Origin: Orbicella franksi
Lineage: Eukaryota
Assembly: GCA_964199315.1 (NCBI GenBank)
Contig: OZ116699.1
Location: 28,458,001 to 28,522,000 of the forward strand
Direction of reading: 5' to 3'
DNA length: 64,000 bases
The notes beneath the pieces are model-generated. The model was not told the DNA's origin. It saw nothing but the letters and a program-made list of their open reading frames with translations, and searched no databases. Of the stretch, positions 7,001 through 63,432 are shown piece after piece (the first letter of the stretch is position 1; every line of letters begins with the position of its first letter). The position numbers and the translations under genes were made by a program.

Positions 7001-10000
7001 TTCTCTTATGCTAAATTTTCAACCTCTCCTACTTATAATTATGGAACTGATTTAAAGGCTTTGAACTAGTTATTTATCAGTAACACCGAAAAAAGAGTTT
7101 AATGGAGTGTTTGAAAAAAGGGTCAGGAAGATTTACATTTGGTGAAATTAATTTTTGTCTTTAAAAGGCTGTTTGATTTTAATTCATATTTTTAGTGAAT
7201 AACAATTAAATGAACTAAGGCTACTAATATGTATGTCATCTATTCGCTTCCGTTTCAAAACTATAATGAGAATCGACAGTGTAAAAGTACCTGGCTGTCC
7301 AGACCAAGGTTAAACAACATGAAGAAAAAAAGAAATGCCCAGATTTGTGGAACAGGCAGCTGTTTGATTCCTTCAGGAAACGCCATGAACACCAGGCCTG
7401 GTCCTAAATATTGAAATGATATTGTTACTTGAGTACAGGTCAGAGAGGAGGTAGGGTGGTGTGATAATAAGAACAACCCTTTGAGAGAAATCGGATTTTA
7501 CTAGCAGCCACGACCCCCCTGGCGGCTACTCAGAAGACAACGGCGATTTAAAAACGGGGTATATTCACCTACGAATCTCGCGAAAATCCAAATTTACTCA
7601 ATTGTCTTTCACTAGAACTATCCTAAAACTGAATATGTTAGACAACGTTCAACTCGAAAAAAAAGCTTTAACAATTTTGCCGTCGTGGTTGGCGTTGTGA
7701 CAATTTTAGTCTAATTTATACTTTGATGTGAAATGACCAATTGAAAAGGTACTTTCTTTTCTTTCTTTCTTTCTTTCAAATTCCCTTCTGCGGAATAACC
7801 TGATACACATTTGCATACCACGGGGGAAAATAAGGGTCATCACAGAAAGGCAATCAGTGTCTAGAAAAATAGTGGTTCCATTCATGTCTACAAGCAGGAT
7901 TTACTGTTTGTTAATTAAATAATTAAGTTCATTAACAAGCAGGAATTGTCTGCCACATGGAATTTGTGCAGTTTAATTTTTTTATTTGATATTAGATACT
8001 CAACTACAAGAAACAAAAGAAAACAAACTTTCGTGTCATATGTTCAAAACAATACGCGAGACACAGCAGAGATTTTACCTCCTTTGACGGCATTACCAAC
8101 TTCAGTTTTGAGTAAGCGTGCCATAAAACCCATCATGCTGAATACGGTAAAGCCCGCGAAAAAACTGGTCATACAATTGATCAATGAAACCACTATGCTG
8201 TCCCTAAAATAAGAGAACAGGGAATTCTTTAGTGAAGACGATCGGAGTTAGCCAAAATCGCACATTATGTTGTCTACCATGGACTAAAGAACTCCAGCAA
8301 TTTTAAAGTGACTAAGGCCGCGTCCACACTACGCTATTTTAAAACTTAGCGTTATTTTTACGTTTAGGCCAACCGTCTACCATAATCCGTCACGAAAACG
8401 GAGCTTTTGGGAAACGCTCTTCAAACCAGAGGAATTTGAAAACGCTGGCATTTCGTTTTCATGTGGAAAGAAAATATTTTGAAAACGGAGCTTTTCGAAA
8501 ACGAACGATGGCGTCAAAATAACCATGTAATTTCCCTGACGGAGTTTTCCCCAAACACAAATCGAAAATGACCGGTGATTGTTTCGTTTTTAAATTCCTC
8601 CCGCGTAGTGTGGACGGAAAACATTTGATGCGTTTTCAGAGTGGAACCTCCGTTTTCAAATTCCTCCAGCGCAGTGTGGACGGGGATTGAGCGGTTGCAA
8701 ATTAATCGTCTAAAAAAGGCATTGACCTTTTATCTATCGTCCCACTCACGCTCATATCAATTACAGAGGGAATTATCATATTTAAACCGTTTTCCTGTCA
8801 CTGATTTCACAGTTTTTCTTTGTATTGAAATAAAATGTTGCTCAGTGATGTAAACCATATGTTATATTTAGTTGTTCGTTTTAAAAGTGGCGAAAGTTGT
8901 CATGCGAATTTTCAACGTTTAAAACCCGAAACTGTTCAAACAAAAAATAAATTTTGCTTGGTTACTGAGTTTTTTGACAAGTATCTTTACGTGGAAAAAT
9001 CTCTAAAACCTGTGAAATGGACGTTAGTAATGTTTCCCTTACTTTTCACAGTTGTTGTTAAACTTGTTGAAGCTACTGTAGGTAAGGAGTCCTCCCATTC
9101 CGATACTGAGTGAGTAAAATATCTGACCAGCGGCTTGCACCCACACCTGTAGAGATCATTAATGCCGAGAACAAGAAGCAAGACCCATGTTTGCTTTTTC
9201 ACGGAGAAATACAGGAAATCAAATGAAGCACCAGAGATAGACCAGCTTCAATTACTATTGCAAAGCTAATAAGGGACGATAAATGAAAAAATAAAAATAA
9301 TATTTTCCAAAACTGCCATTCTTCTAAATAGAGTGTATTTGGTCTTGTCACGCGTATTAGATATCAAATGACATTGGATATATATTGTATCTTTTGCTTA
9401 GTTTTACGAAAAAAAGTAAGTGAAGTTTATGGCCCTCTCAATGTCTTTCAAGAAAGCATTACACTAGTAAAAAAAAACTGTAAAGTAGTAAAGTTACTGA
9501 GATCTTTCAGATTCTTCTCCTAGCTAAGCCGACGGCTTTAACAGTCTAGGGGTTTGTACACGTTTCTACTGTACCAGTGAGCAGAATGGCACTCTTACCT
9601 GCGGATCTTTAAGTCTGGAGAAATCAGGCTTCAAGTAGAAGAGGATCCCGTCACCGGCTCCCTCTAAAGTAGCACCACGAATGAGAAAAATGAACAAGAC
9701 CAGGTATGGAAACAAAGCAGTGAAGTAGACAACCTGGAAAGCAAGACACTGGCGTTTCAGTTTTATATCTCACTGGTCAATGTACGCCGTATCAATCGCA
9801 TCGTTTCTCATTCTGTTGAAAGAAAGTGACTTTTACTACATGCGACCAAAAGTATACTAGCAACTGAGAGTCCTCAGCTCAGAAATGGTTGGTTTTTTAA
9901 TGTCAAGACAACGTTTCTATCTGACGGCAAGTGTTTCTCTGGAATCTCTTCTTCTTTGCTTTTCTTATTGAATTAATTTTTTTTGAGAAAAGAACAAAGC

Positions 10001-16237: not shown

Positions 16238-16702
16238 TTATGTAAGGGCCGGTACGGTAACTCTAAGCAAACATACATTTCTGCCAGATCGAGGACTCAA
16301 TTCCGACCTGCTTCAATCTGAGTTGTGTCTCCGATTGGATTAAGACTTTTTTCGGGTAGATTCTCACTCGTCTCTCAAAAGGGAGAAAAAACAGCCCACT
16401 GAGACTTTTGTTTCAGACAAGAAAATGGAATTTTTTTTTTTTAGGTGAACATATCTTTAGTTCTAAAGCCTATTAGGAACCTTAGTAACCGGGTGTGTAT
16501 TTTGGTTAGCCATAAGAAACCGGGGTTGCCATAACCCAAATATCTGCTAAATCTTACTTCTACTGAGTCATCTTGGTCAATCAATACAAGAAGCGATACT
16601 TAGACGGTTTCTTGTGCCCTACAGCAATAAAAAATTGTGTTGTTCTCCTGACAGCCGTTAATCCTTGTACCTAGACTAGTAAAAGACGTGCCACCTCCGT
16701 CC

Positions 16703-16954: not shown

Positions 16955-19900
16955 TCAACTCACCAAAACGACTTCAGGTGCCCTTTTGTCTTGAATGCCA
17001 TTGTCTCGTAAAATTTGATCCATCATTTTCTGGTCTGGCTTCAGCAGTGTGTAAAAACGCTGGGAACAACAAAAGTTTTAAAACGAACTCACTCAGGATA
17101 TATTTTGTGAAACAAATATGGTCCACACCGAGTTAAAAAAGAGATTGTAAAACTTACATCTAAAGGACTGAATAAATGCAGAGGTAAATCATTCAACATT
17201 CACTTCATGAAAACAAATTACAGACGAAAATATAAATAAGACGAAGACGATACAAGATGAAGTAGAAGTCAGAAACAGAAGCACTTACTTTACTGAGAGT
17301 TCCAGGTGTTTTCCACATTTGGTGAATTGCAAATCCTGGAATAAGCAATATGGAAGCTAGGGCCATCATCCAGCCCAGCAGCTCGGCCCATCCGGGGTAC
17401 GGTTGTTTGTTATACGACACACCGTTCCACTGAATTATATTTGCCATGACAATTGCCTGAAGAGAAGTATAGAGAGAAATTAAAGGGAACTGAAACATGT
17501 GAGTTAACAAATCGGTTGTAATTACTGAAGTTTGACTTTGCATCTTTGGCGACGTTCTCTTTTTTTTACGTCCTTCCAACTGAGCAATAAAGACTCTGAA
17601 AGACTCTGGAGACATGTCTGAAGTAAGTAAGTTAAGTCTGCATACGAGGCAGGTAGCTCAATGTGGAGACGAACGTACTAATCATGAGGCCACCACGCGT
17701 TACGAGGGTGCAGTGATAACGTATATATTGGGTAATTTTTACATTTTTCTGTTTTTTGCGTTCTCCCTCATTTTTTTCAATAAAGCTGCAAAAGTCCCAA
17801 CTATTAATTTCCGCCTCTCTTACTCTTTAGAATCTTCTAAACAACTTACGATCGTGCAAACGGGCGAGATGTATTTCCAACAAATTCTGAACCACAGGTA
17901 CGGCCTCTGGCCAGTCATGGCTTCCACGTCATCGCTAAATCTGTCAACACCTTATTAGAGATTAAAGGCTATTATAGTCCCGGTTTCACGTTACATACAA
18001 CAAACTCTACATATCCTGTTTTATGTTTTCTACAGACCCAGTTCCTAAAGACATCCTGCGCTGTAAACACTCATTTTACGTACGACGATTAACTCTTCTT
18101 CCTGGATAGCGCATCTTGGTTTTTATTTACCCTAGTTACAATCCTCTTTATAAAGCGCATAAAAAAATATTTCGATATTCAAGTTTTGAGTAATGACTCA
18201 CCATAAATCCAACCGATTGTAATAATCTCCATCAGAGATACAATCAGCAGAGATAATCCCGCAGTCTGGTAATCCATCAAGTTAAAGAAATACATTCCAC
18301 CCTAGATAAACGTAATTAAAATAATCGTTAACAGTTCCTCTACGCTGAGTCCCTGAAACTGCTGACAATAAATTTTGCTTAGACAGTTATCACTGTTCTG
18401 TTACGAGGAAACCGTTAATTGTTGGAAATTTTGTCGGAGCTAATATTTTCGATCAGACAATTTGTTTTCTTTATTAGAGCAGAAATTAGGTCATTTGACT
18501 GAGCTTGTTGGATTTTGGACAGGAATTACCAACTTACTCCGATGCAAACTAAGTGCCTCAAAGAAACCTTAACTGGTTGAATAACTTGGTTCCACTACTC
18601 GGACTGTTGGCACTTAACTTCCGTTTCTGTTAATAGTAGCCAAAAGGCCACTTCTCCTGGTTGAAATGCTAGTCTAACTTTGTCAGGTTGCCCCAACAAT
18701 TTGACGGTACCAATTGATACATTTGGGCCGAGCCTGAGACGCACTGTGAGAGAAATGTCCACGTACGGTTCAAGGCTATATCTAACTACAACAGAAACGC
18801 CGGAACGTGTGTTGCAGGTCTTTACAAAATTTCGCTGCAAAAGCCAAAAGTGTACAGAACAATTAATGGATTCGGTTTTATCTTCGTAGCGAAGTTATCA
18901 AGATCTCCGGCCGTGTCTATCGAAGCCTTAGCCATGATAATCTCGGCTCCTATAACACAGTATATGTTTAAATAGGAATGAATCCAGAATAGATATATAT
19001 ATTTTAAAAATGGCAATTCTTACTTGCGTAACACAAGGAAGCCCAAGAAGCAGCATGCTGGCGCACAGGATTAGGACGAAGATTGGTTTCCGGTAACCTT
19101 TCTTTAGCCATGGATACTCATCTGTGAGGCCAGTGATAACTGCTTCAATAGTAGCAAACTGAAATGCAAAGACAAAGTGTCCATGAAGTGAATACAACCA
19201 AATGCTGTCAGCTCGGTTATGAACGCATGATTGTCGCCAAAAAAGCTCTTCTCTAGCTTTAGTCTAAAGAAAATCCGTTAAGAAAATGTTAAAAAAAAAA
19301 ATGCTTAAATACACATTTAGTTACAGATGGAGTTATAAATCCAAAAGGCATTGAACCTGAACAAACTCAGTCAAGTAGAAACTTAAGGATTGAGTTCAAT
19401 TCTGGGTTCTACAGGAAAAATATGACAATGGAAAAAGAAAAGAAAAAAATATGACATTTCGTGCGATATTTAAATCAAGTCACTTTATCTGAGCAAACAT
19501 TACGCGAGTTTCATATACCTTCAAGGACAGACGAGTAGTTACGACTACGTTTCAGAGCCAGAGTGAACTGCTACATGGTACTGATAAGCTCGAATTCCCC
19601 TAAATCATTAGTCTGGTGGTTAAGCCTATGAAGATTAAAGACCAAAATGCAGTGTAGTGGAGCACTAGCCCCTGAGAAAATTGTACTGTTACGGTACCTG
19701 GCTGTCCAATCCTAAGGTGACCAGCATGAAGAAAAACAAGATGGCCCACAGAACAGACAAAGGCATTTGCGATATCGCTTCTGGATAAACAACAAAAGCC
19801 AATCCGGGACCTATGAAAGCGTACACAGAAATATGAATCTTAGCACTCTAAGTCCAGGGTCAGAAATGATCAGTCAAGTTACAGTGGAATATTTATCCAG

Positions 19901-22900: not shown

Positions 22901-25900
22901 AGGCAGAAATACACCACAACCCAGGATAAAACTGTTGTTCCAACCAGTTCCCATCTCATATCTCCAAACTCTCCAATAGCTCCCGTAATTTGCAATACGT
23001 TGTCACTTAAAATGATTAATTGAAGGACAAGTTTTAGCTTCCAACGGTATGATTATGCATAGGGCCTGCCTTCATATTTCGGTTGTTACTCAATTTACAA
23101 GATGAATTCAGGCTTGTGGAACATAGTGGGTGTGGATATCTTAGTCGCTATTACAAAAGGGTACTGCTGTTAGTAAAGATCGCTCGAAAAGAAGAAAAAC
23201 GACCAAACAAACAAACAAACAAACAAACAAACAAACGACAAATAAATAAATTAAAAGAAAAAAACAACAAAAAACAAATAGTGACAAAAAAGAAGTAATG
23301 TGTCATTGTCAATCAGCCGTTAGGTAGAAAGTAGTCTCCTTTCTCGCTAGCAGCACGATTTACGATATCTTAAGTAGTGCAGACATCCAATCAGTTTTTC
23401 ATTTGGCCGTTAGTCTCACAGCTGTACTTTTACGTTCCCTGCTATACTTGAGTAAATTACATTAAGATAACAAAGCGTCAAGCTTAATTTTCATTGATGC
23501 AACAATAAGTGAATACAGAGAGAAGCTAATTTTGTTGTTTACTCACTTCCAAAACTCAGCACTTGGAGAGGTGTACTTAGCTGTGCAATTTATGGGCAAA
23601 TTATACGCAGTGCAGTTAAAGACATCGTCCTCTGTTCTTTCTGCCCTAAATGAAATAAAATAGCAATCCGTTAAGAACCTGTTGTTACAGTTGAGCTTGC
23701 TGTAATGTATCTTTTGTTAAGAAGGCATGCAAATGAGACGAAAAGGTCAACACATTTCAGAATGACTTTGTTCGTTCGCATGTCAGACTCTTGAGAACTG
23801 TAATAACATCTATGCATGTCCGTCAAATAATACACTCGTGATATTGACTTTCAACAATGGCATGGAAATGTCGAACCGTTTTAAAAGTTTTATTTCTTGT
23901 CAAACATCCATGTTGCCACCTAATTCAGACCATGTCATGATTCATTTGGGAGGTTACAAGTGTACAATTTGTTACACGCAACTGATTGCATGGGAGTATT
24001 TACAAACATAACAATTGTAACGTCACAAATAAATTATCACATGATCTGAATTAGGTGGCAACGAGGATGTAAACACGTTAGCTGAATCTGTCTATTGATG
24101 ATTGCAAAAACTCCCTTGAACTGTTGAAAGAACGGATACAAAGGAGGCAACTAGAGATTTTTGATAAACTTTTCACGCCGACGGTCAAATATCGTGCTAG
24201 TTAATGGGCTATAAGTAGAAGGTTCTGCAGTAAACTTGAGATGGGCACCCTGTTAACCAAAAGTTCCCTCTTCTTTTACAGCCAAACAAGGGAGTGTCAC
24301 CTCTCCACAGCTTCCGGGGACACTTACAGGCAGAACATCGAGTTCCAGGGATGGTCACAGGTTTTCCACGGCACTTCAGATCGAAATGATTCAAACAAGA
24401 AGTAAAATGTCCAGGACAAGATTATGATGTAGTAGATACAGCAGAGATATGACATGAGACACGTGGCGTATCCAACACCTAGAAATTAAACAACAGCAAC
24501 GCTAAAATGCTTATATCCTAGCTTATTAATCATATTTAAAGAGCGGCCTTCAACTGAGTGTGGTAGAACCAAAGTAATCACTCTGACCAATCACAAGAAA
24601 CGCAGACAATCCGGTGAACCAATCAGTATTCCAAGTAATTACAGACAGCTGACGCAAAGCGCGGGAAAACTTGTGCGAACGAGTCTCGACTGGTTTTGGT
24701 ATGACTTCAGATTTGATGAGAAAGTAGCGAGAGTTATTTAAGGCAATACCAATTATACCAAATGAAAACTGCTCTAATCACATTATAGGGGTATCGATAT
24801 CGACCAGGTAGTGTGTCTCGCATGGGGTTAAGACTCCTTTATAGACCATCCTCATGGCTAAATGTCCCTTAATTTGTTTTGGCTTTTTCCTTTTTCTTAA
24901 CTCATCATTTGTGAATATTTTTTTGTATCATCATCTGAAAATGATGCCATTTAACTATAATAATAATAACAACAACAGCAACAACAACAACAAAATAAAT
25001 AGTTACTTCCTTTCAGAAATGTTTGGCATAACTCTTTTCATACTTCTTGGAGAAACTCAAGGCAAGCCTAAGAAGTAAAATCGTGGTATATTGCAGCGTT
25101 TTTAGTGATCCCTTTCACTTAATTGCATGATTTCTGGCCCACTCTGGCGTTTAAGGTGGTATCACAGTTACCTTTCATCAGCGGACAAATTGATTTCCAC
25201 ACTCCAATGACTCCGGAACTAAACCATTGACCAATAGCAAGTTCCAGGAAGAATAATGGGACACCATTCAAGAACAACATCAGGAAATACGGGATAAGAA
25301 ACGATGCTGTCAGGGAAAACACCAAAAAATATGTAACCATTCACAGGCCTTTTATTTTCTCTAAGAGTGTTTTACTGTATTTCAATTTGAAGTCATAAGA
25401 CGTACAATTTGCAAGACTAACGTGGTTACTACAAAATGATAAACAATCGGTGATCACGTACCAAACACGCTTCATTCTATACAAGTTTTTGAGCTTTATA
25501 ACACAATTATCGTCTGTCAAAGAAAATATGTCGTCGGTGAGATTTACACTTGCAGCTAAATGCAGAGAATTGCACCCTATTAAAAGACTTTAGTCAGCCT
25601 CAGCCATTTTCGATGCCATCGAAATTACTGATATCGCATGGTGAAGCAAAATCTTATTGCTCTACCGTAAGTTGTGTTTCTGAAAATATATTTAATTATC
25701 CTTACTAGTTTCAAACAAATAAATAAAATAAATAAAGGTTTGTAAGCTTTACATTGGGCGTGGCTCTTCTATGCTAAGACCTATATACAGTCGTTTCTCC
25801 AATCAGCATCTATGCCCGCTGCACTGAAAGAAGCAATGATCAAACCGAAGCTGAAGAAGGACAACCTGGACTCTGAGGATTATTCAAACTTTAGACCTAT

Positions 25901-27472
25901 CTCAAATCTGAAGGTTGTATCTAAGATAATTGCAAAGGCAGTATCTTGTCAATTGAGCGACTATCTACGCGATAATGATCTAGAGGAATCTTTTCAGTCA
26001 GCATATAAACGCTTTCACAGCACGGAGACTGCTCTCCTGAGGGTGCAAAATGACATTCTCTGTGAGATAGATAATCAGAAATGCGTTATCCTGCTACTGT
26101 TGGACATGTCTGCGGCGTTTGATACCGTCGACCATAAACTGCTACTAGAAAGAATGGAAAAACGCTACGGCGTGAAAGGAAATGCGCTAAAATGGTTTCG
26201 ATCCTATCTTCAAGACCGAAAGCAGTTTGTGATGATTGACGGAACCAGGTCAGAGATGAAAGAACTTCGCTACGGTGTTCCCCAGGGATCCGTTTTAGGG
26301 CCAATCCTGTATTTGTTATACACATCGCCCATCGGGGACATCATCAAACGGCACGGACTTAACTACCATCTATACGCTGATGACACCCAGCTCTACCTCT
26401 CATTTAAGCCCAACTACGCCGAACAACCTGGTTCTATAGCTAAAATAGAAGCATGTGTTTCTGAGATCGACTCGTGGATGGTGTGCAATAAGCTGAAACT
26501 AAACAGAGGAAAGACGGAGCTTTTGATCTTGAGCGCACGACATCGTCCACCCCCATTAATAGACCACGTCGATGTGTCTGGTGAACAGATCGAGCCATCT
26601 ACTTCTGCAAAGAACATTGGAGTCATCTTTGATGAGTACATGTCACTGGAAAAGCATGTTACCAGTACCTGCAAGGCCTGTTTCTTCCATCTTAGAAACA
26701 TTAGGAGGATAAGAGTCTGTCTATCTCTAGCAGACACTGAAAAGTTAGTACATGCATTCATCACTTCCAAACTAGATAACGTCAACTCGCTTCTATATGG
26801 ACTACCAAAATTTTTGATAGATCGTCTACAAAATGTCCAGAATGCTGCGACTCGCGTTGTTACCAGAACAAGGAAATACGATCATATCAAGCCGGTTTTA
26901 AAGCAGCTACACTGGCTTCCAATAAGCCAGCGCATCAATTATAAGATTTTACTTTTAACCTATAAAGCGCTCAACGGCCAGGCCCCTAATTACATTACTG
27001 AACTGCTAGAGCCTTATGTACCAAGCAGAAATCTTCGATCCTCCTCCAAAAACCTCTTGAAAGTACCACCTGTCAAGTTAATAGGCTATGGTCATAGGTG
27101 TTTCTCTTTTGTAGCACCTAGCCTATGGAACTCTCTTCCGAACAATATAAGAGGGAGCGGCTCGCTATCAGATTTTAAGACTTGTATAAAGACATATCTT
27201 TTTAACAAATTTTATAACTAGACTTTTGGTTAGTTAGTTAATTAGTAGATTAGATAGTTTAGCTAGTTAGTTAGTCAGTCACTTAGTTAAGTTAGTCAGT
27301 TTTTATTTAAAGGTTTTAATGATTCCTATTTTTACTTTCATTTTTACAGCTTAGCTATTTTATTTGTTAGTAATTTTTTATCACTGATGTAAATTTTTAA
27401 TGTAAATTTTATTTTTAATAACATTTTTTACTGTAAAGCGCCATGAGCCCTGGATATGGCGCTATACAAATC

Positions 27473-27525
<53 letters not shown>

Positions 27526-28337
27526 TTCGACATGCTCCGAATAAAATATGATTGTCAAACTCTCGCACGTAAACAAAAACAAAAGTGTGCTGACAAGGCC
27601 CCTTTAAAGAGCTACCCATTCTTAAGTCAGCGCTAACTTAGGCTAATTGAACCACTACACATGTCCGGCTAACTGGAGTGCTGTTCGGGCTAACACCAAA
27701 GTGGTTTTTACGCCAACCGGAGCGCTGTTTAGGCTAACCAAAGTATAAGTGGTATTATTCAGGCTAACTGGAGTACATTTTAGTGTAGTGCAATTCTTGT
27801 ATTTAACTGCAAATAGATTTACAGTGTGTAAACTCTTGCACTGCCGTACAGTGTGTAAACGTTTTACACAGCCGTTGGCAATGAAATGAAGTTCGGGATT
27901 CATCGTACTCAGAAGTTTAAAAATCTTGTGACAGAAAGATCTCGTTAGATAGGATTTTTTTTTTTCTGAAACACCTCTCTTCCTACCGGATACAATTTCT
28001 CTGGTATTCTTTTGCCGCGACCTCTATTCCAAGTGTATCTTTGGTTGCACATGTTTGATACCGGATTTGGCGAGCTTGAAACATACAAGGTACTTCTGCG
28101 CATTGCTGGTATGTAATCTAGTTCAAGACAACTCTTACCTCCACCATTTTTGTAAGCCAGGTAGGGAAACCTCCAGATGTTTCCAAATCCGATGCAGTAA
28201 CCCAGCGAAGAGAGAATAAAGTCTGCTTTGCGACCCCATTTTTCCCGCTCTTCGACTGTAACAGACTCTGTTTTCTCCTCCGACTCCTCAGATAGCAGTT
28301 TTCCAGAGGGAGCGGTACCGTTTCTTTCGGTAGACAT
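16955..28337 (-). CDS. SLC6: SLC6/NSS transporter paralog C (14 coding exons, ~600 aa)
   Basis: Exons: 28337-28139, 25306-25172, 24478-24328, 23645-23547, 23005-22873, 22084-21950, 21594-21491, 20405-20281, 19810-19698, 19158-19024, 18301-18202, 17950-17850, 17456-17289, 17059-16955 (TGA). Frame is continuous. Motifs: [38 protein letters not shown]. Two acceptors are AAG. Confidence 0.94.
20716..21345 (+). repeat. Cluster of four degenerate tRNA-like/SINE modules (intron 7 of paralog C)
   Basis: Modules at ~20716-20800, 20946-21015, 21062-21135 and 21281-21345, each resembling TAGCTCAGTTGGTAGAG...ACCGGTATCGCAGAGGTCATGGGTTCGAATCCC. Confidence 0.6.
22660..22850 (+). mobile_element. tRNA-derived SINE-like repeat (intron 5 of paralog C)
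   Basis: A-box-like TAGCTCGGTTGGTAGAG and B-box-like GGTTCAAGTC at tRNA spacing, followed by a T-run. The acceptor stem does not form, so this is not a functional tRNA. Confidence 0.7.
23205..23275. repeat. (AAAC)n microsatellite, intron 4 of paralog C
   Basis: Direct reading of the sequence. Confidence 0.85.
23904..24096. mobile_element. MITE, AATAGACAGATTC-TIR family (5' end clipped), intron 3 of paralog C
   Basis: Long inverted repeat catccatgttgccacctaattcaga / tctgaattaggtggcaacgaggatg. Homologous copy at 44345-44545. Confidence 0.7.
24540..24776. mobile_element. CCAATCA-rich MITE (AGAGCGG/T...TTTTCA TIR); degraded relatives at ~2800-3165
   Basis: agagcggccttcaa ... tgaaaactgctcta, with repeated CCAATCA/TGATTGG motifs. 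Confidence 0.6.
25794..27523 (+). mobile_element. 5'-truncated L2/CR1-group LINE, antisense in intron 1 of SLC6 paralog C
   Basis: Uninterrupted 469-aa ORF (25812-27221) with RT motifs [44 protein letters not shown] and the L2-type C-terminus [18 protein letters not shown]. No endonuclease domain. Followed by a TTAG-rich 3'UTR, a terminal stem-loop and a (TAT)n tail. Confidence 0.93.
25812..27221 (+). CDS. Reverse transcriptase (partial ORF2) of the L2-type LINE
   Basis: RT domain motifs including YADD. The ATG is probably internal to a truncated ORF2. Confidence 0.9.
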   Translation: MPAALKEAMIKPKLKKDNLDSEDYSNFRPISNLKVVSKIIAKAVSCQLSDYLRDNDLEESFQSAYKRFHSTETALLRVQNDILCEIDNQKCVILLLLDMSAAFDTVDHKLLLERMEKRYGVKGNALKWFRSYLQDRKQFVMIDGTRSEMKELRYGVPQGSVLGPILYLLYTSPIGDIIKRHGLNYHLYADDTQLYLSFKPNYAEQPGSIAKIEACVSEIDSWMVCNKLKLNRGKTELLILSARHRPPPLIDHVDVSGEQIEPSTSAKNIGVIFDEYMSLEKHVTSTCKACFFHLRNIRRIRVCLSLADTEKLVHAFITSKLDNVNSLLYGLPKFLIDRLQNVQNAATRVVTRTRKYDHIKPVLKQLHWLPISQRINYKILLLTYKALNGQAPNYITELLEPYVPSRNLRSSSKNLLKVPPVKLIGYGHRCFSFVAPSLWNSLPNNIRGSGSLSDFKTCIKTYLFNKFYN

Positions 28338-28810
28338 TTTCGTTACAGAGTATCCTTTCCGTTTTTCCCTTGTCAACTGTAGATTACAGCTGTTTGTTTT
28401 ACTGCCTGTTTGGAAAGTTATCAAATACATGATAGCATATAATTATATGTTACTAAGAAAACAATTAATAAAGTGAAAGCTGCAAGACAAGCTAATACAC
28501 ATTCCAACAAAATACTAAAGGCTTGTCCTGGGCTCCAAGCAGAGATCGCAAACAGCGCGGGAAAACAATTTTCATCGGCCTGGAAATTTGCCTAGGAGAT
28601 TGTGCAAATCGTGACACTTTCACGTGATCAAACTCAAGTATGTCATGCACCCTTCCCTGCTCACCGTGTTCTGTCTCTGTGCCAAAAGGCTCGTGGAAAT
28701 AACATCAAGATGAAAGCACTCGAGAGTGACGACTGTTGGGCTTTAGATGCCTCTTTGGCTACCGAAGGCATTTGATCGAAATCAAGAATCATGCAATGAC
28801 TTAATCAGGT

Positions 28811-50918: not shown

Positions 50919-51902
50919 TCACTGCGACAAAACTCTTTCACGAGAGTTTGAAATGCCGCGCATGTCAGTACCTGATACGATTTCGGTGACAGACCGACTG
51001 CTCTGACTGGTGCAACAGCATAGGCATAACGAGACAAGCTGCTTGAAAGCTCGACGAAATTCTGGGATTTTAACAGCGTAGACGATGGGATTGACCGCTG
51101 AGTTGCTGTAATGCATGAACTTGAGAAACAACAGAAGCTCCATGCTGAAAATTCCAGGCTGGCATTTATTGCAGAACACCAAGAGTAACTGAACAATGAA
51201 GAAAGGTAGCCAGGCAATCACGAAGAACCCAATCACAAGCGCGATTGTTACAGCAATGCGCATGTCACGCTTCATCGTTCGTGAGGTATCTTGACTTGGC
51301 TGTATTCGATGGCTGGCCGCATGCCATATCCTCGCGTAGGTAAACAGAATAACCAGCAGGGGGATAACGAAAAACACTACGAAAAGTAACAGCATGTTTG
51401 CTTGCCGGTTTTCTACCCTAAGCTTCAGCGCAGATCCACAAGCTGCCGCTGGAATAACCCACACAAATACAAGAGATGCATAGTAAACTTTAGCGGATGT
51501 GTTTCGATGCCGAATTGGGTAGACCACAGCAAAGAAGCGTTCTAGGCTGATCGTGACCAGATGCAGAATTGAACAGGTGCCTGCAAAGAGGTCGAGAACG
51601 TAATAAACTTGCTGTAACGTGTCGCCTCCAGATGAGTAGAGTAACATTGAGATCCAAATCGGGATGGAGATGACGCCCACCAAGATATCTGCCACAGCAA
51701 GGCTGACCACAAAATAATTTGTTATCGTGCGCAATCTCGAGTGTCGGCTAAACGATGCCACAACTAGTCCGTTCCCGAATACTGCCAAGAATGCAATGAC
51801 GACGTAAAATGTGCACGATACGATAACTGCCTCCCTCTTGAAAAATGGGCTATCGATCATAGGAGGAAGGCGAGCAGCACTCGGGTTAGAATGATTGGCC
51901 AT
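50919..51902 (-). CDS. Class A (rhodopsin-like) GPCR, aminergic-like orphan, 327 aa, intronless CDS
   Basis: Seven hydrophobic helices with GN (TM1), LAVAD (TM2), SLERF (TM3), W4.50, P5.50, AWLPFF (TM6), NSAVNPIVY (TM7), a helix 8 and a CLCCC palmitoylation-type cluster. Confidence 0.95.
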   Translation of the reverse strand: MANHSNPSAARLPPMIDSPFFKREAVIVSCTFYVVIAFLAVFGNGLVVASFSRHSRLRTITNYFVVSLAVADILVGVISIPIWISMLLYSSGGDTLQQVYYVLDLFAGTCSILHLVTISLERFFAVVYPIRHRNTSAKVYYASLVFVWVIPAAACGSALKLRVENRQANMLLLFVVFFVIPLLVILFTYARIWHAASHRIQPSQDTSRTMKRDMRIAVTIALVIGFFVIAWLPFFIVQLLLVFCNKCQPGIFSMELLLFLKFMHYSNSAVNPIVYAVKIPEFRRAFKQLVSLCLCCCTSQSSRSVTEIVSGTDMRGISNSRERVLSQ

Positions 51903-60900: not shown

Positions 60901-61529
60901 GAATGTAGACAAGTGAAATAATTTATGGCTGGCCTTTGGTAGATCGGTATGAGAATGAGACAAACTAAATCCAGTTACAATAGCGGTGAAAATGTCATGG
61001 CTCGTGTTACACTAAGCATTTAGATCAACTGCTTACCCTTAACCGTTTTTCTTTTTGCAAAATGTAGAAATTGAGTTGCTGGAACACTCTCTTCTGTCAA
61101 TATATTGCGTGAATAGTTTTTGCAAACGTTCACTTGATCTAAGCCGCTCTTGGTACGTTGCATGCAAGAATGACTAATCTAGGTCATTTTAAAAACTAAT
61201 AAAACAGTGAGCGATGACATATGAAGAACTTTCTAGCGCTGAATCCTGGGCCAGATCTTGGGCCTTGTAGTAGAATAAAAACTAAGGGGATGTCTTGCTC
61301 AGCAAAATTGAATCGACTTGTGATTTAGCAAACCGGACAGCTACATTGGACAAGCAAATCCCGAACGTACCGTACGCCCGGGATCGTACGTAGAACAAAC
61401 GGCATTCTCTGTCGATGGGTGTTTGGAAATCGCTAAGATGATCATGATCTTTCAGTCATGGATTTTCCATTCGGCCACCAACGAAGTAACACGTGCTCTG
61501 ATATTAATTAACTAATATTGGTGACTGAT

Positions 61530-63284
61530 GGCATACTGTAAAATATAGACTGGAGTGGACTGGAGTGGACTGGAGTGGACTGGAGTGGAGTGGACTGGAT
61601 TTGTAAAACATGGAGTGGATTTGTAAAAGGTGGATTTGTAAAAGGTGGATTTGTAAAGGGTGGATTTGTAAAAGGTGGATTTGTAAAAGGTGGATTTGTA
61701 AAACGTGGATTTGTAAAGGGTGGATTTGTAAAACGTGGATTTGTAAAAGGTGGATTTGTAAAACGTGGATTTGTAAAAGGTGGATTTGTCAAACATGGAT
61801 TTGTAAAAGGTGGATTTGTAAAACATGGATTTGTAAAAAATGATAATTTAAAATTAAAGCGCGCGACGAGAACAGTACGGAATTTTTTTTTCGCGCTGAT
61901 CAAATCGGAAATCGTGCAATAAAAGCTAAAGATTGTGGCACCCAGGAAACAATAAACGCGACAAGAATGTAACAGTATTGAGAGAAAACCGGATGTTATC
62001 CTACAATATAATTAGCCAGAAGTTTGTGCAAGCGGCTAACAAAATCAACTGTTATTTAATTCCATAAATCTTTGCTTTTAGCTATTGCTACCCTGGCTAC
62101 CAAAGGTCTTTGTCGGGCGTCGGGATACTTCTTTTCGTTTGAGTATTGGCACTGTTGACAGCTTGGCGCTGCTGTCAGTTACATGTATCCATAAACAGAA
62201 AGCTGGAGTGAATGTCTTGACCTTTGAACAATAAAGTCTTGCATGATTTAAATTCTGGCGCGAAAGTTTACACGGCGCGCTCGAGATCGAGATGGCAGCT
62301 TTCAAGCTTCCATCTCTTTCTCTTAAAAAGCGAAAACGGCAGTTATCTTTGCCCGAGTTTGGGTGAAATTCTATAAACCTAAAGGAAGAAATAGGAAGCG
62401 GTACTTTTGGAACAGTTTATTTGGCTAAATGCACCGACGAGGAACAATGTGTTGTTATTAACTAGTGTTTGAGAAATTTACAGTCATTCCTTCAACAAAT
62501 AAAATGTTGAACAAACGTGTAGCACCGGCTCAAGCAATTCATTTTCTTGATCGGAATTAATCCGTTTCTCACCAAGAAGTGTTACAATATTGCATTTATA
62601 TACTTTGTGATAAAATATAGAGGAATTATAATTCTTTGTATGCTTTCGTTACAGTTAATGTTGAAGTGAATTAATCGTAAAAGTAAAGAATGAATTGTTT
62701 GAAATGTATGTAAAAGTAAATGCATGTAAAAGTAAAGAATGAATTATTTGGAATATATACCATTGATATCCTGTTTGCTCGAAGGATCTGCAAACAAAAT
62801 AAAGTTTATTGTTTTACATTTGTTTTACAATTTTTTTTACAAATCCACCTTTTGCACAAACTAAAAAAGCAAAGATTTACGGAATTAAATAACAGTTGAT
62901 TTTGTTAGCCGCTTGCACAAACTTCTGCCTAATTATATTGTAGGATAGCATCCGGTTTTCTGCTACGTTCTTGCCGCTTATTGTCACCTGGGTGCCACAA
63001 TCTCTAGTTTTTATCGCACGGTTTCCGATTTGATCAGCGCAAAAAAAAAAAAAATCCGTACTGTACTCGTCGCGCGCTTATCATTTTTTACAAATCCATT
63101 TTTTAAAAACCCACCTTTTACAAATCCATGTTTTACAAATCCGCGCTTTACAAATCCATGTTTTACAAATCCACGTTTTACAAATCCATGTTTTACAAAT
63201 CCGCGTTTTCCAAATCCATTCCATATTTTACAAATCGAGTCCACTCCACTCCAGTCCACTCCAGTCCATGTTTTACAATATGCC
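61530..63284. mobile_element. Non-autonomous foldback DNA transposon, Mutator/MULE (Rehavkus-like), 1755 bp
   Basis: Perfect 9-bp TSD GTGACTGAT at 61521-61529 and 63285-63293. Termini GGCATA(C/T)TGTAAAA. Inverted arms ~61530-62081 and ~62861-63284 contain 10-bp (GGAGTGGACT) and 15-bp (TGGATTTGTAAAAGG-type) tandem units plus ~220 bp of unique inverted sequence. Confidence 0.88.
62292..62465 (+). pseudogene. Protein kinase N-terminal fragment (subdomains I-II) carried inside the foldback element
   Basis: In frame from ATG 62292: MAAFKLPSLSLKKRKRQLSLPEFG*NSINLKEEIGSGTFGTVYLAKCTDEEQCVVIN*. Contains the GxGxFG loop and VYLAK. The VAIK-like strand reads VVIN. Internal TGA at 62364. Confidence 0.75.
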
Positions 63285-63432
63285 GTGACTGATCATTCTG
63301 TTTGTTTATCAATAGTGGCGCCTTTTTGCAAGGATATTAACTAGGCAAACGCAAATAAATTCCCATTGCTGCTACAATAATCGTTTTCCCAGGCGTTCGA
63401 TAAGAGGCTATGATTTGTGTAGTTATTATGAG

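Follow-up and report, generated by a model that had tools for sequence, protein, structure and literature searches.

A decayed kinase gene in a coral foldback transposon and its intact counterparts beside MULE transposases in anthozoans

The stretch of DNA analysed here, hereafter the window, comprises 64,000 nucleotides of the coral Orbicella franksi (GenBank assembly GCA_964199315.1, contig OZ116699.1, positions 28,458,001 to 28,522,000 of the forward strand), and its positions 61530-63284 are a foldback transposon, which is flanked by a perfect 9-bp target-site duplication (GTGACTGAT) and carries between its inverted arms the broken start of a protein kinase gene. We consider it likely that this element is an internally deleted, non-autonomous member of an anthozoan family of Mutator-like elements (MULEs) with both a kinase and a transposase gene, the kinase having been kept since it is helpful to the element. 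Across the family the kinase is linked to the same termini and to the transposase, its carriers have transposed repeatedly, and the kinase is under purifying selection at the level of the protein.

The middle of the window element is 785 bp long (62080-62864) and holds the kinase-like frame. Starting with the ATG at 62292, this frame reads 24 residues, a TGA at 62364-62366 and then 32 residues with a Gly-rich loop, ending in ...CVVIN. Namely, the position of the catalytic lysine is occupied by asparagine (AAC, 62460-62462), and a TAG stop follows at 62463-62465. The translation is exactly as claimed in a first-pass annotation made from the letters of the window, which had also pointed to a GC-rich leader ahead of the ATG, present as GGCGCGAAAGTTTACACGGCGCGC at 62257-62280, and had recognized in the frame the Gly-rich loop and strand beta-3 of a kinase. 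When compared with Pfam Pkinase, the 32-residue piece (62367-62462) matches model positions 2-29 with E=0.0024, under the gathering score owing to its shortness, and among its PDB matches listed at E<=10 all 169 of 169 are kinases. The decisive test here is homology, and the kinase identity of the fragment is settled by the fact that window 62202-62461 is 91.9% identical in DNA to positions 336-594 of another locus, L004 (L numbers denote loci outside the window and P numbers encoded proteins), at the start of an intact kinase open reading frame (ORF). The window fragment has the same residue as L004 at 49 of 57 codons. The window copy itself is without a complete catalytic domain, having only the Gly-rich loop and beta-3, with asparagine and a stop at the lysine position and the earlier TGA. 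This TGA is a private change of the window copy. At its site, TGG is read in L006, L004, L005 and L002, in most of the DNA contig depth and in the single RNA-library contig spanning it. None of the larger window ORFs tested is a kinase. The kinase feature of the window is a dead remnant, and neither a working gene nor a fresh capture.

How the gene came to be cut short can be read from the junction at 62461/62462. The sequence around it (...GTTGTTATTAA|CTA.TG...) is common to the window and to L006, whereas in the DNA alignment L004 and L005 continue into the kinase. L006 and the window element are 91% identical over 1.5 kb and their flanks are unrelated, so that the deleted form must itself have transposed. 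RNA-library contigs match 62223-62461 and then stay in frame through the lysine codon (...VVIKKLKGEAADA), and another such contig matches from 62460 on, preceded by other sequence, a (GTT)n run. In the ORFs P0013 and P0015, too, the AT-rich segment beyond the junction (62462-62790, here segment B) stands 3' of the kinase, again behind a (GTT)n run; no source for it was found among the loci retrieved, apart from L006. We infer from these alignments that the window form is best explained by a short deletion in a copy resembling P0015, with only two bases (AA) common at the joint. The suggestion of the first-pass annotation that the element is an internal-deletion derivative of a larger one with a whole kinase gene is borne out, both by this junction, common to an independent copy with different flanks, and by longer relatives with the same termini, leader and N-terminus (L004, L034 and L024-L033), which carry complete, intact kinase ORFs.

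An exhaustive phmmer search with the 32-residue piece led to five short ORFs in ENA assemblies, which have a common 25-residue N-terminus and diverge from one another at different points, and these five, used as stepping stones, led to a large kinase family of 170 proteins. Its closest complete member, at L004 425-1540, is an uninterrupted ORF of 371 codons with a Pkinase match of E=4e-38. Among 22 family members, the beta-3 lysine (K57), the HRDLKxxN motif and DFG are invariant, and the alpha-C glutamate (E73) and APE nearly so. Intact members, in other words, have a full catalytic domain (Pkinase E=4e-38, with the lysine, HRD...N and DFG in place). The best PDB match, with E=2e-14, is equally to OSR1, MNK2, HPK1 and ULK1, and the family is distant from any solved kinase. 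Its N-terminus carries a basic cluster, a putative nuclear signal. All named family members come from anthozoans, and annotation pipelines assign to them unrelated kinase names; in particular, octocoral proteomes annotate these kinases as cell-cycle or tyrosine kinases. Many members (P0098, P0101-P0103, P0108-P0112 and P0127) are about 600 residues long and have a C-terminal extension of some 230 residues without a Pfam match.

About 25 other loci, drawn from coral assemblies and metagenomes, have the leader and kinase start of the window copy directly within a left end of the same kind. Nearly every locus with usable flanks has arm repeats or termini of the family beside its kinase, and the kinase invariably points inward from the left end. 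Each of the seven kinases whose DNA context can be used is linked to arms; six of them fall in one clade (100/99 support), and the seventh, L022, falls in the sister clade, with a diverged left end about 300 bp 5' of its ATG, which reads GGCATGTGGTAAAACGCGGACTGGACT and then 25-bp repeats. Complete elements bear this out at different scales. L023 is a complete element of 2752 bp with the duplication ATCAGGGTG and a kinase ORF of 304 residues, and L001 (3070 bp, duplication CGTTCACAA) has the same termini, leader and kinase N-terminus, its kinase being interrupted by a nested insertion with an ORF for a GIY-YIG protein. L026, L027, L030 and L032 are foldbacks of 4.4-4.5 kb with four different perfect 9-bp duplications, and each of their arms, 1.7-2.4 kb long, contains a whole, intact kinase gene, the two genes of an element being convergent. 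In the assembly that holds these foldbacks, the 395-residue kinase P0094 is encoded identically at no fewer than 24 places, and the 17 copies that were read differ at 0-1 nucleotides in 1185, a near-identity that indicates very recent activity, as judged from the sequences. The duplications of the window copy, L001, L023, L026, L027, L030 and L032 have the length typical of MULE/MuDR elements (about 9 bp, 8-11), and the long terminal inverted repeats typical of that group are represented by the arms of the window element, with termini (GGCATA.TGTA...) that are homologous across loci.

Two of these loci have peculiarities of their own. The left arm of L021 (5294-7300) is about 2 kb long and consists of some 90 tandem units, far more than in other copies. 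The nested insertion in L001 (10167-11578, about 1.4 kb), which splits the kinase remnant, has inverted ends and a duplicated CAATGTGTTGTT; its 281-residue ORF has a GIY-YIG domain (E=1e-4) and a precomputed HTH_animal match, and to judge by this ORF the insertion looks like a fragment of a Penelope-like element.

The window element itself has no ORF in 61530-63284 that matches a transposase. In four lineages (L004, L034, L021 and L024/L025/L031), the order on one strand is left end, kinase, a gap of 3.0-6.7 kb and a MULE-type transposase, in agreement with the larger element with a whole kinase gene that the first-pass annotation had inferred. At L024, L025 and L031, three insertions of one unit, the left flanks differ from site to site, and a stretch of at least 6.6 kb, which begins at the left terminus, spans the kinase and enters a same-strand ORF of at least 1017 residues, is 99.7% identical. 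This ORF is 73% identical to L034 12584-13912. The latter ORF lies 3.4 kb downstream of the L034 kinase, itself 84% identical to the L004 kinase. Pfam MULE is covered over positions 2-99 of 99 by the L034 ORF (E=5e-5) and by L004 4686-6668 (E=8e-5), and MULE is present in every one of the ten named ESM Atlas clusters that match the L034 ORF best. What is more, a tblastn search with pieces of the L034 transposase found the same protein downstream of the kinase in both L004 and L021. In L004 this frame stays open up to the end of the locus, over 719 codons; among relatives, this locus is the one nearest to the window fragment, and it combines an intact kinase ORF with a transposase frame that is open over all readable sequence.

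Between kinase and transposase, L024 (7253-7777), L025 (7255-7779) and L031 (7253-7777) have an additional ORF of 174 residues, for which there is no Pfam match and no counterpart in L034, and which language-model features place with clusters of Herpes_teg_N/OTU-like cysteine proteases (0.95, with low recognition), a weak lead. The kinase-MULE copy of L034 appears to sit inside a helicase-like gene (7622-7850 and about 16480-16700), with a weak match to DEAD/DEAH motif I immediately before the left terminus.

Wherever synonymous divergence (dS) can be estimated between element lineages, the ratio of nonsynonymous to synonymous divergence (dN/dS) of the kinase is 0.075-0.146; in the remaining lineage pairs, dS of the kinase is saturated and the proportion of nonsynonymous differences (pN) is 0.13-0.32. 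The transposases follow the same pattern, with a pN of 0.16 and a synonymous proportion (pS) of 0.81 between L025 and L034. Judged by these substitution patterns, the constraint is on the kinase protein and not merely on DNA near the end of the element. In the non-autonomous derivatives (window, L001, L003, L006, L007 and L015), the kinase gene is truncated, frameshifted or interrupted, a decay that is expected once a copy is no longer a source of the protein. As for expression, RNA-library contigs cover the leader and kinase start, one from a polyA library being identical to window 62090-62355, and RNA runs of several corals contain 18-39% of sampled words of the L004 kinase coding sequence. 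These data are compatible with transcription, short of proof.

The block directly upstream of the kinase start (62202-62291) contains TTGACCTTTGA, a TATA-like box (ATAAAAT) that has degenerated in the window copy, TTGCAT.ATTTAA and the GC-rich leader. Aligned with L001, L003, L004, L006, L012 and L015, it is conserved as TTGACCTTTGACC, with two TGACC half-sites, followed by ATAAAAT, TTGCATAATTTAA and the GC-rich leader. The block is a candidate promoter.

Taken together, these observations suggest the following picture. Complete members would have two genes on one strand: first, just inside the left terminal repeat, a single-ORF kinase of active type, about 370-395 residues long and with its own conserved upstream block, and second, 3.0-6.7 kb further in, a MULE transposase of about 1000 residues. 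Two routes would lead to shorter derivatives: internal deletion, and an inverted duplication of the left end together with its kinase, which yields foldbacks with one kinase gene per arm. The window copy would have retained the left end, the upstream block and the kinase start, would have lost the rest by the deletion that ends at 62461/62462, and would have gained its private TGA later; encoding no functional kinase, it should be mobile only with transposase supplied in trans. The kinase would be retained because it is useful to the element, for example by phosphorylating the transposase or host repair or silencing factors, a role suggested by analogy with accessory genes of other MULEs, and the basic N-terminal cluster could serve as a nuclear signal. 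On this analogy, the most economical reading makes the kinase an accessory gene comparable to mudrB, mutB and vanC and upheld by selection among element copies. More specifically, it could be a trans-acting accessory factor needed for efficient transposition or for escape from host silencing, a tentative proposal to which we give somewhat less than an even chance.

Several points weigh against this picture. The benefit of the kinase to the element is something that we infer. Transposition has also occurred in copies whose kinase is not intact, as the window form and L006 lie at different sites, and the kinase is therefore not needed in cis. Genomic context is known for few of the 170 family proteins, and some of these may be ordinary host genes. 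The MULE domain scores of 24.0 and 23.5 bits are to be set against a Pfam gathering score of 27.6. No right end or target duplication of the transposase-bearing copies was seen, as their loci end too early, and in L034, where an inverted copy of the left end was sought downstream of the transposase, no right end was found. Finally, the RNA evidence consists of assembled RNA-library contigs, which may contain DNA, and in the one raw-read polyA run no read aligned.

The explanation that survives best among the others, and which we nevertheless regard as unlikely, is that an ancestral MULE captured the complete, intronless gene of an anthozoan-specific kinase family, and that this gene has ridden along as a passenger with no role in transposition, being kept either by a benefit to the host, such as an amplified signalling or immune kinase, or by the short lifetimes of copies. 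It is in keeping with this explanation that the arm-linked kinases are nested in a larger anthozoan kinase family, few of whose members have a known context, and that non-autonomous copies with broken kinases still spread. A parallel exists in the fungus Rhizophagus irregularis, where high-copy kinase genes are enriched next to MULEs, which has been read as MULE-driven gene amplification (PMC8647823). As in the coral family, MULEs are associated there with amplified Ser/Thr/Tyr kinase genes; the association in the fungus, however, is a statistical enrichment of neighbouring genes, whereas the coral kinase lies inside the element, between the terminal repeats and with the duplications outside, and is inherited together with the transposase. 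What speaks against a mere passenger is that the kinase is intact and constrained (dN/dS 0.08-0.15) across lineages whose synonymous sites are saturated and whose transposases have diverged in parallel, and that it keeps the same position and orientation beside the left end in every lineage, the sister clade included. Functionless cargo should instead decay in the master lineages, just as it does in the derivatives.

Rice Pack-MULEs are known to capture fragments of host genes, and the first-pass annotation had offered a Pack-MULE-like capture as one reading of the window element. On this reading, a non-autonomous foldback would have taken up a piece of a host kinase gene (5'UTR and first exon) from elsewhere. 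Looking at the window copy alone, one can see why: it contains just part of the gene, lacks a transposase, and is bounded by MULE-type ends with a 9-bp duplication. Like a plant Pack-MULE, it is a transposase-less MULE-type element in which long inverted arms enclose a portion of a cellular-type gene. We nonetheless find this reading highly improbable. The full-length gene occurs with the same leader in the same place within the same termini, transposase-bearing copies included; the fragment ends at a deletion junction, through which other copies continue, and not at an exon boundary; and no arm-free parental gene is present among the loci with usable context. Unlike the cargo of plant Pack-MULEs, then, the window piece is a fragment not copied from a host but descended from the element family's own full-length gene, of which it is a decayed remnant, with an internal-deletion junction that sister copies have in common. 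It is harder still to maintain that the kinases are host genes 5' of which foldbacks tend to insert, an arrangement that several short contigs with only a left arm 5' of the kinase (L008-L012 and L017) would fit, since it is contradicted by both arms and the 9-bp duplications lying outside the kinase in complete elements (window, L001, L023 and L026-L032), by the kinase being within the inverted repeat itself in the large foldbacks, and by identical units at sites with unrelated flanks. The opposite was found, that is, of single-copy, intron-rich host genes never associated with the arms, the outcome that the first-pass annotation had named as fatal to its proposal.

Returning to an accessory kinase gene kept by selection among element copies, MULEs with a second gene have precedents in maize (mudrA and mudrB), in yeast (Mutyl, with mutB) and in Arabidopsis (VANDAL/Hiun, with vanB and vanC) (PMC6446971). 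Like the coral family, these are cut-and-paste elements that have long terminal repeats, encode a MULE transposase and are flanked by a 9-bp duplication; their autonomous copies carry a second, family-specific gene, and there are many deletion derivatives without functional genes. The coral family differs from them in its hosts, which are anthozoans, and in the nature of the second gene, here a full eukaryotic protein kinase in which every catalytic motif is present. Host-type regulatory enzymes are also found on animal and protist MULEs, namely an OTU domain on Hydra MuDR-6_HM and SET domains on MULEs of Phytophthora (table in PMC6446971), and in these, too, the accessory module acts on protein modification. 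The coral kinase, on the other hand, is a separate gene with its own upstream block beside the left end, and it is neither a protease nor a methyltransferase. The same review lists as accessory ORFs or domains mudrB, mutB, vanB/C, OTU, SET and FAR1, and the word kinase is absent from it (PMC6446971). In the full-text literature we found nothing pertinent on a kinase-encoding transposon or MULE, or on a link between MULEs and kinases in cnidarians, a Repbase entry without a description in print being possible. A MULE family that carries a complete protein kinase beside its transposase was, accordingly, found described nowhere.

By architecture, the window element can be likened to two further groups. 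In Drosophila Foldback (FB) elements, long arms made up of short units in tandem surround a middle that varies, and the duplication is 9 bp long. Rehavkus elements have a 9-bp duplication and a minisatellite (PMC6446971). With elements of both types the window element has in common long tandem-repeat arms, the 9-bp duplication and a variable middle, and it is by architecture alone that we compare them. The PHD finger that is the hallmark of Rehavkus has no Pfam match in the parts of the coral transposase examined (the L034 pieces and 661 residues of L004, the C-terminal part lying outside these). To our knowledge, a kinase gene is part of neither FB nor Rehavkus.

Accessory genes of DNA transposons are few, and mostly without an assigned function. 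Should the kinase indeed be such an accessory factor, it would be the first protein kinase demonstrated among the working genes of any eukaryotic cut-and-paste transposon, and a driver of kinase amplification in coral genomes. A conserved, active-type kinase under purifying selection beside a MULE transposase would show a transposon bringing its own signalling enzyme. The purpose that a kinase may serve for a transposon can be tested directly, since there are natural copies that are intact and have been active recently. For genome annotation there is a practical side as well: annotated under cell-cycle or tyrosine kinase names, the element-borne kinases swell coral kinomes and bring wrong labels into them, and dead copies, that of the window included, strew kinase-like pseudo-exons across coral genomes.

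As for the remaining anatomy of the window element, the foldback that the first-pass annotation had drawn around the kinase frame is confirmed. The two identical copies of GTGACTGAT occupy 61521-61529 and 63285-63293. The left arm (61530-62079, plus strand), delimited by inverted-repeat pairs I1-I25 and by tandem arrays, has homologous termini in L001, L015, L023 and L024-L033. It begins at 61530 with the terminus GGCATACTGTAAAAT and continues with tandem arrays of 10-bp repeats (GACTGGAGTG, 61548-61599) and 15-bp repeats (GTGGATTTGTAAAAG, 61615-61838) and with a unique inner part (61857-62079), all on the plus strand. The right arm (62865-63284, minus strand), recognized by its inverted repeats, tandem arrays and comparison of termini, ends in ...GTTTTACAATATGCC. 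The arms, of about 550 and 420 bp and with units of 10 bp and 15 bp in tandem, are 82-97% complementary. On the plus strand between them lie, in order, a spacer piece whose origin was not traced and which is matched by L006 only and by L016 in part (62080-62201), the upstream block and leader (62202-62291, aligned with L006, L004, L001, L003, L012 and L015), the kinase remnant (62292-62461), which spans codons 1-56 and 2 bases of codon 57 with the N-terminal motif, the Gly-rich loop and strand beta-3, and segment B (62462-62790), fused to the kinase at the deletion junction.

An innermost arm-like piece (62791-62864, minus strand) completes the middle. Its part 62791-62853 is the reverse complement of L034 7944-8003 (81.5%), and 62812-62854 matches L001 11770-11813. 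The first-pass annotation had taken an AATAAA at about 62787 for the sign of a 3'UTR-like tract. The motif, which lies at 62798-62803 within this piece, cannot be upheld as a polyadenylation signal, for it occurs 156 times in the window, and the copy in question stands in the reverse complement of the arm-proximal leader of L034. One RNA-library contig joins 61512 to 63323, thereby skipping 1810 bases, where a precise empty site would skip 1764, the element plus one duplication; it may stem from an empty-site allele or be an artefact and, being a single contig with a 39-base side, was not counted as the former. Across the 64-kb window, the 11-base core of the arm unit has no further occurrence, and there is no second copy of the element.

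Elsewhere in the window, a reverse-transcriptase ORF (RVT_1, E=9e-29) lies on the plus strand at 25812-27221, and an intronless gene for a rhodopsin-type receptor (7tm_1, E=5e-45) on the minus strand at 50919-51902. The first and last exons of a sodium:neurotransmitter symporter gene are found on the minus strand at 17205-17615 and 27945-28430. The sequencing runs that contain the window stretch come from corals.

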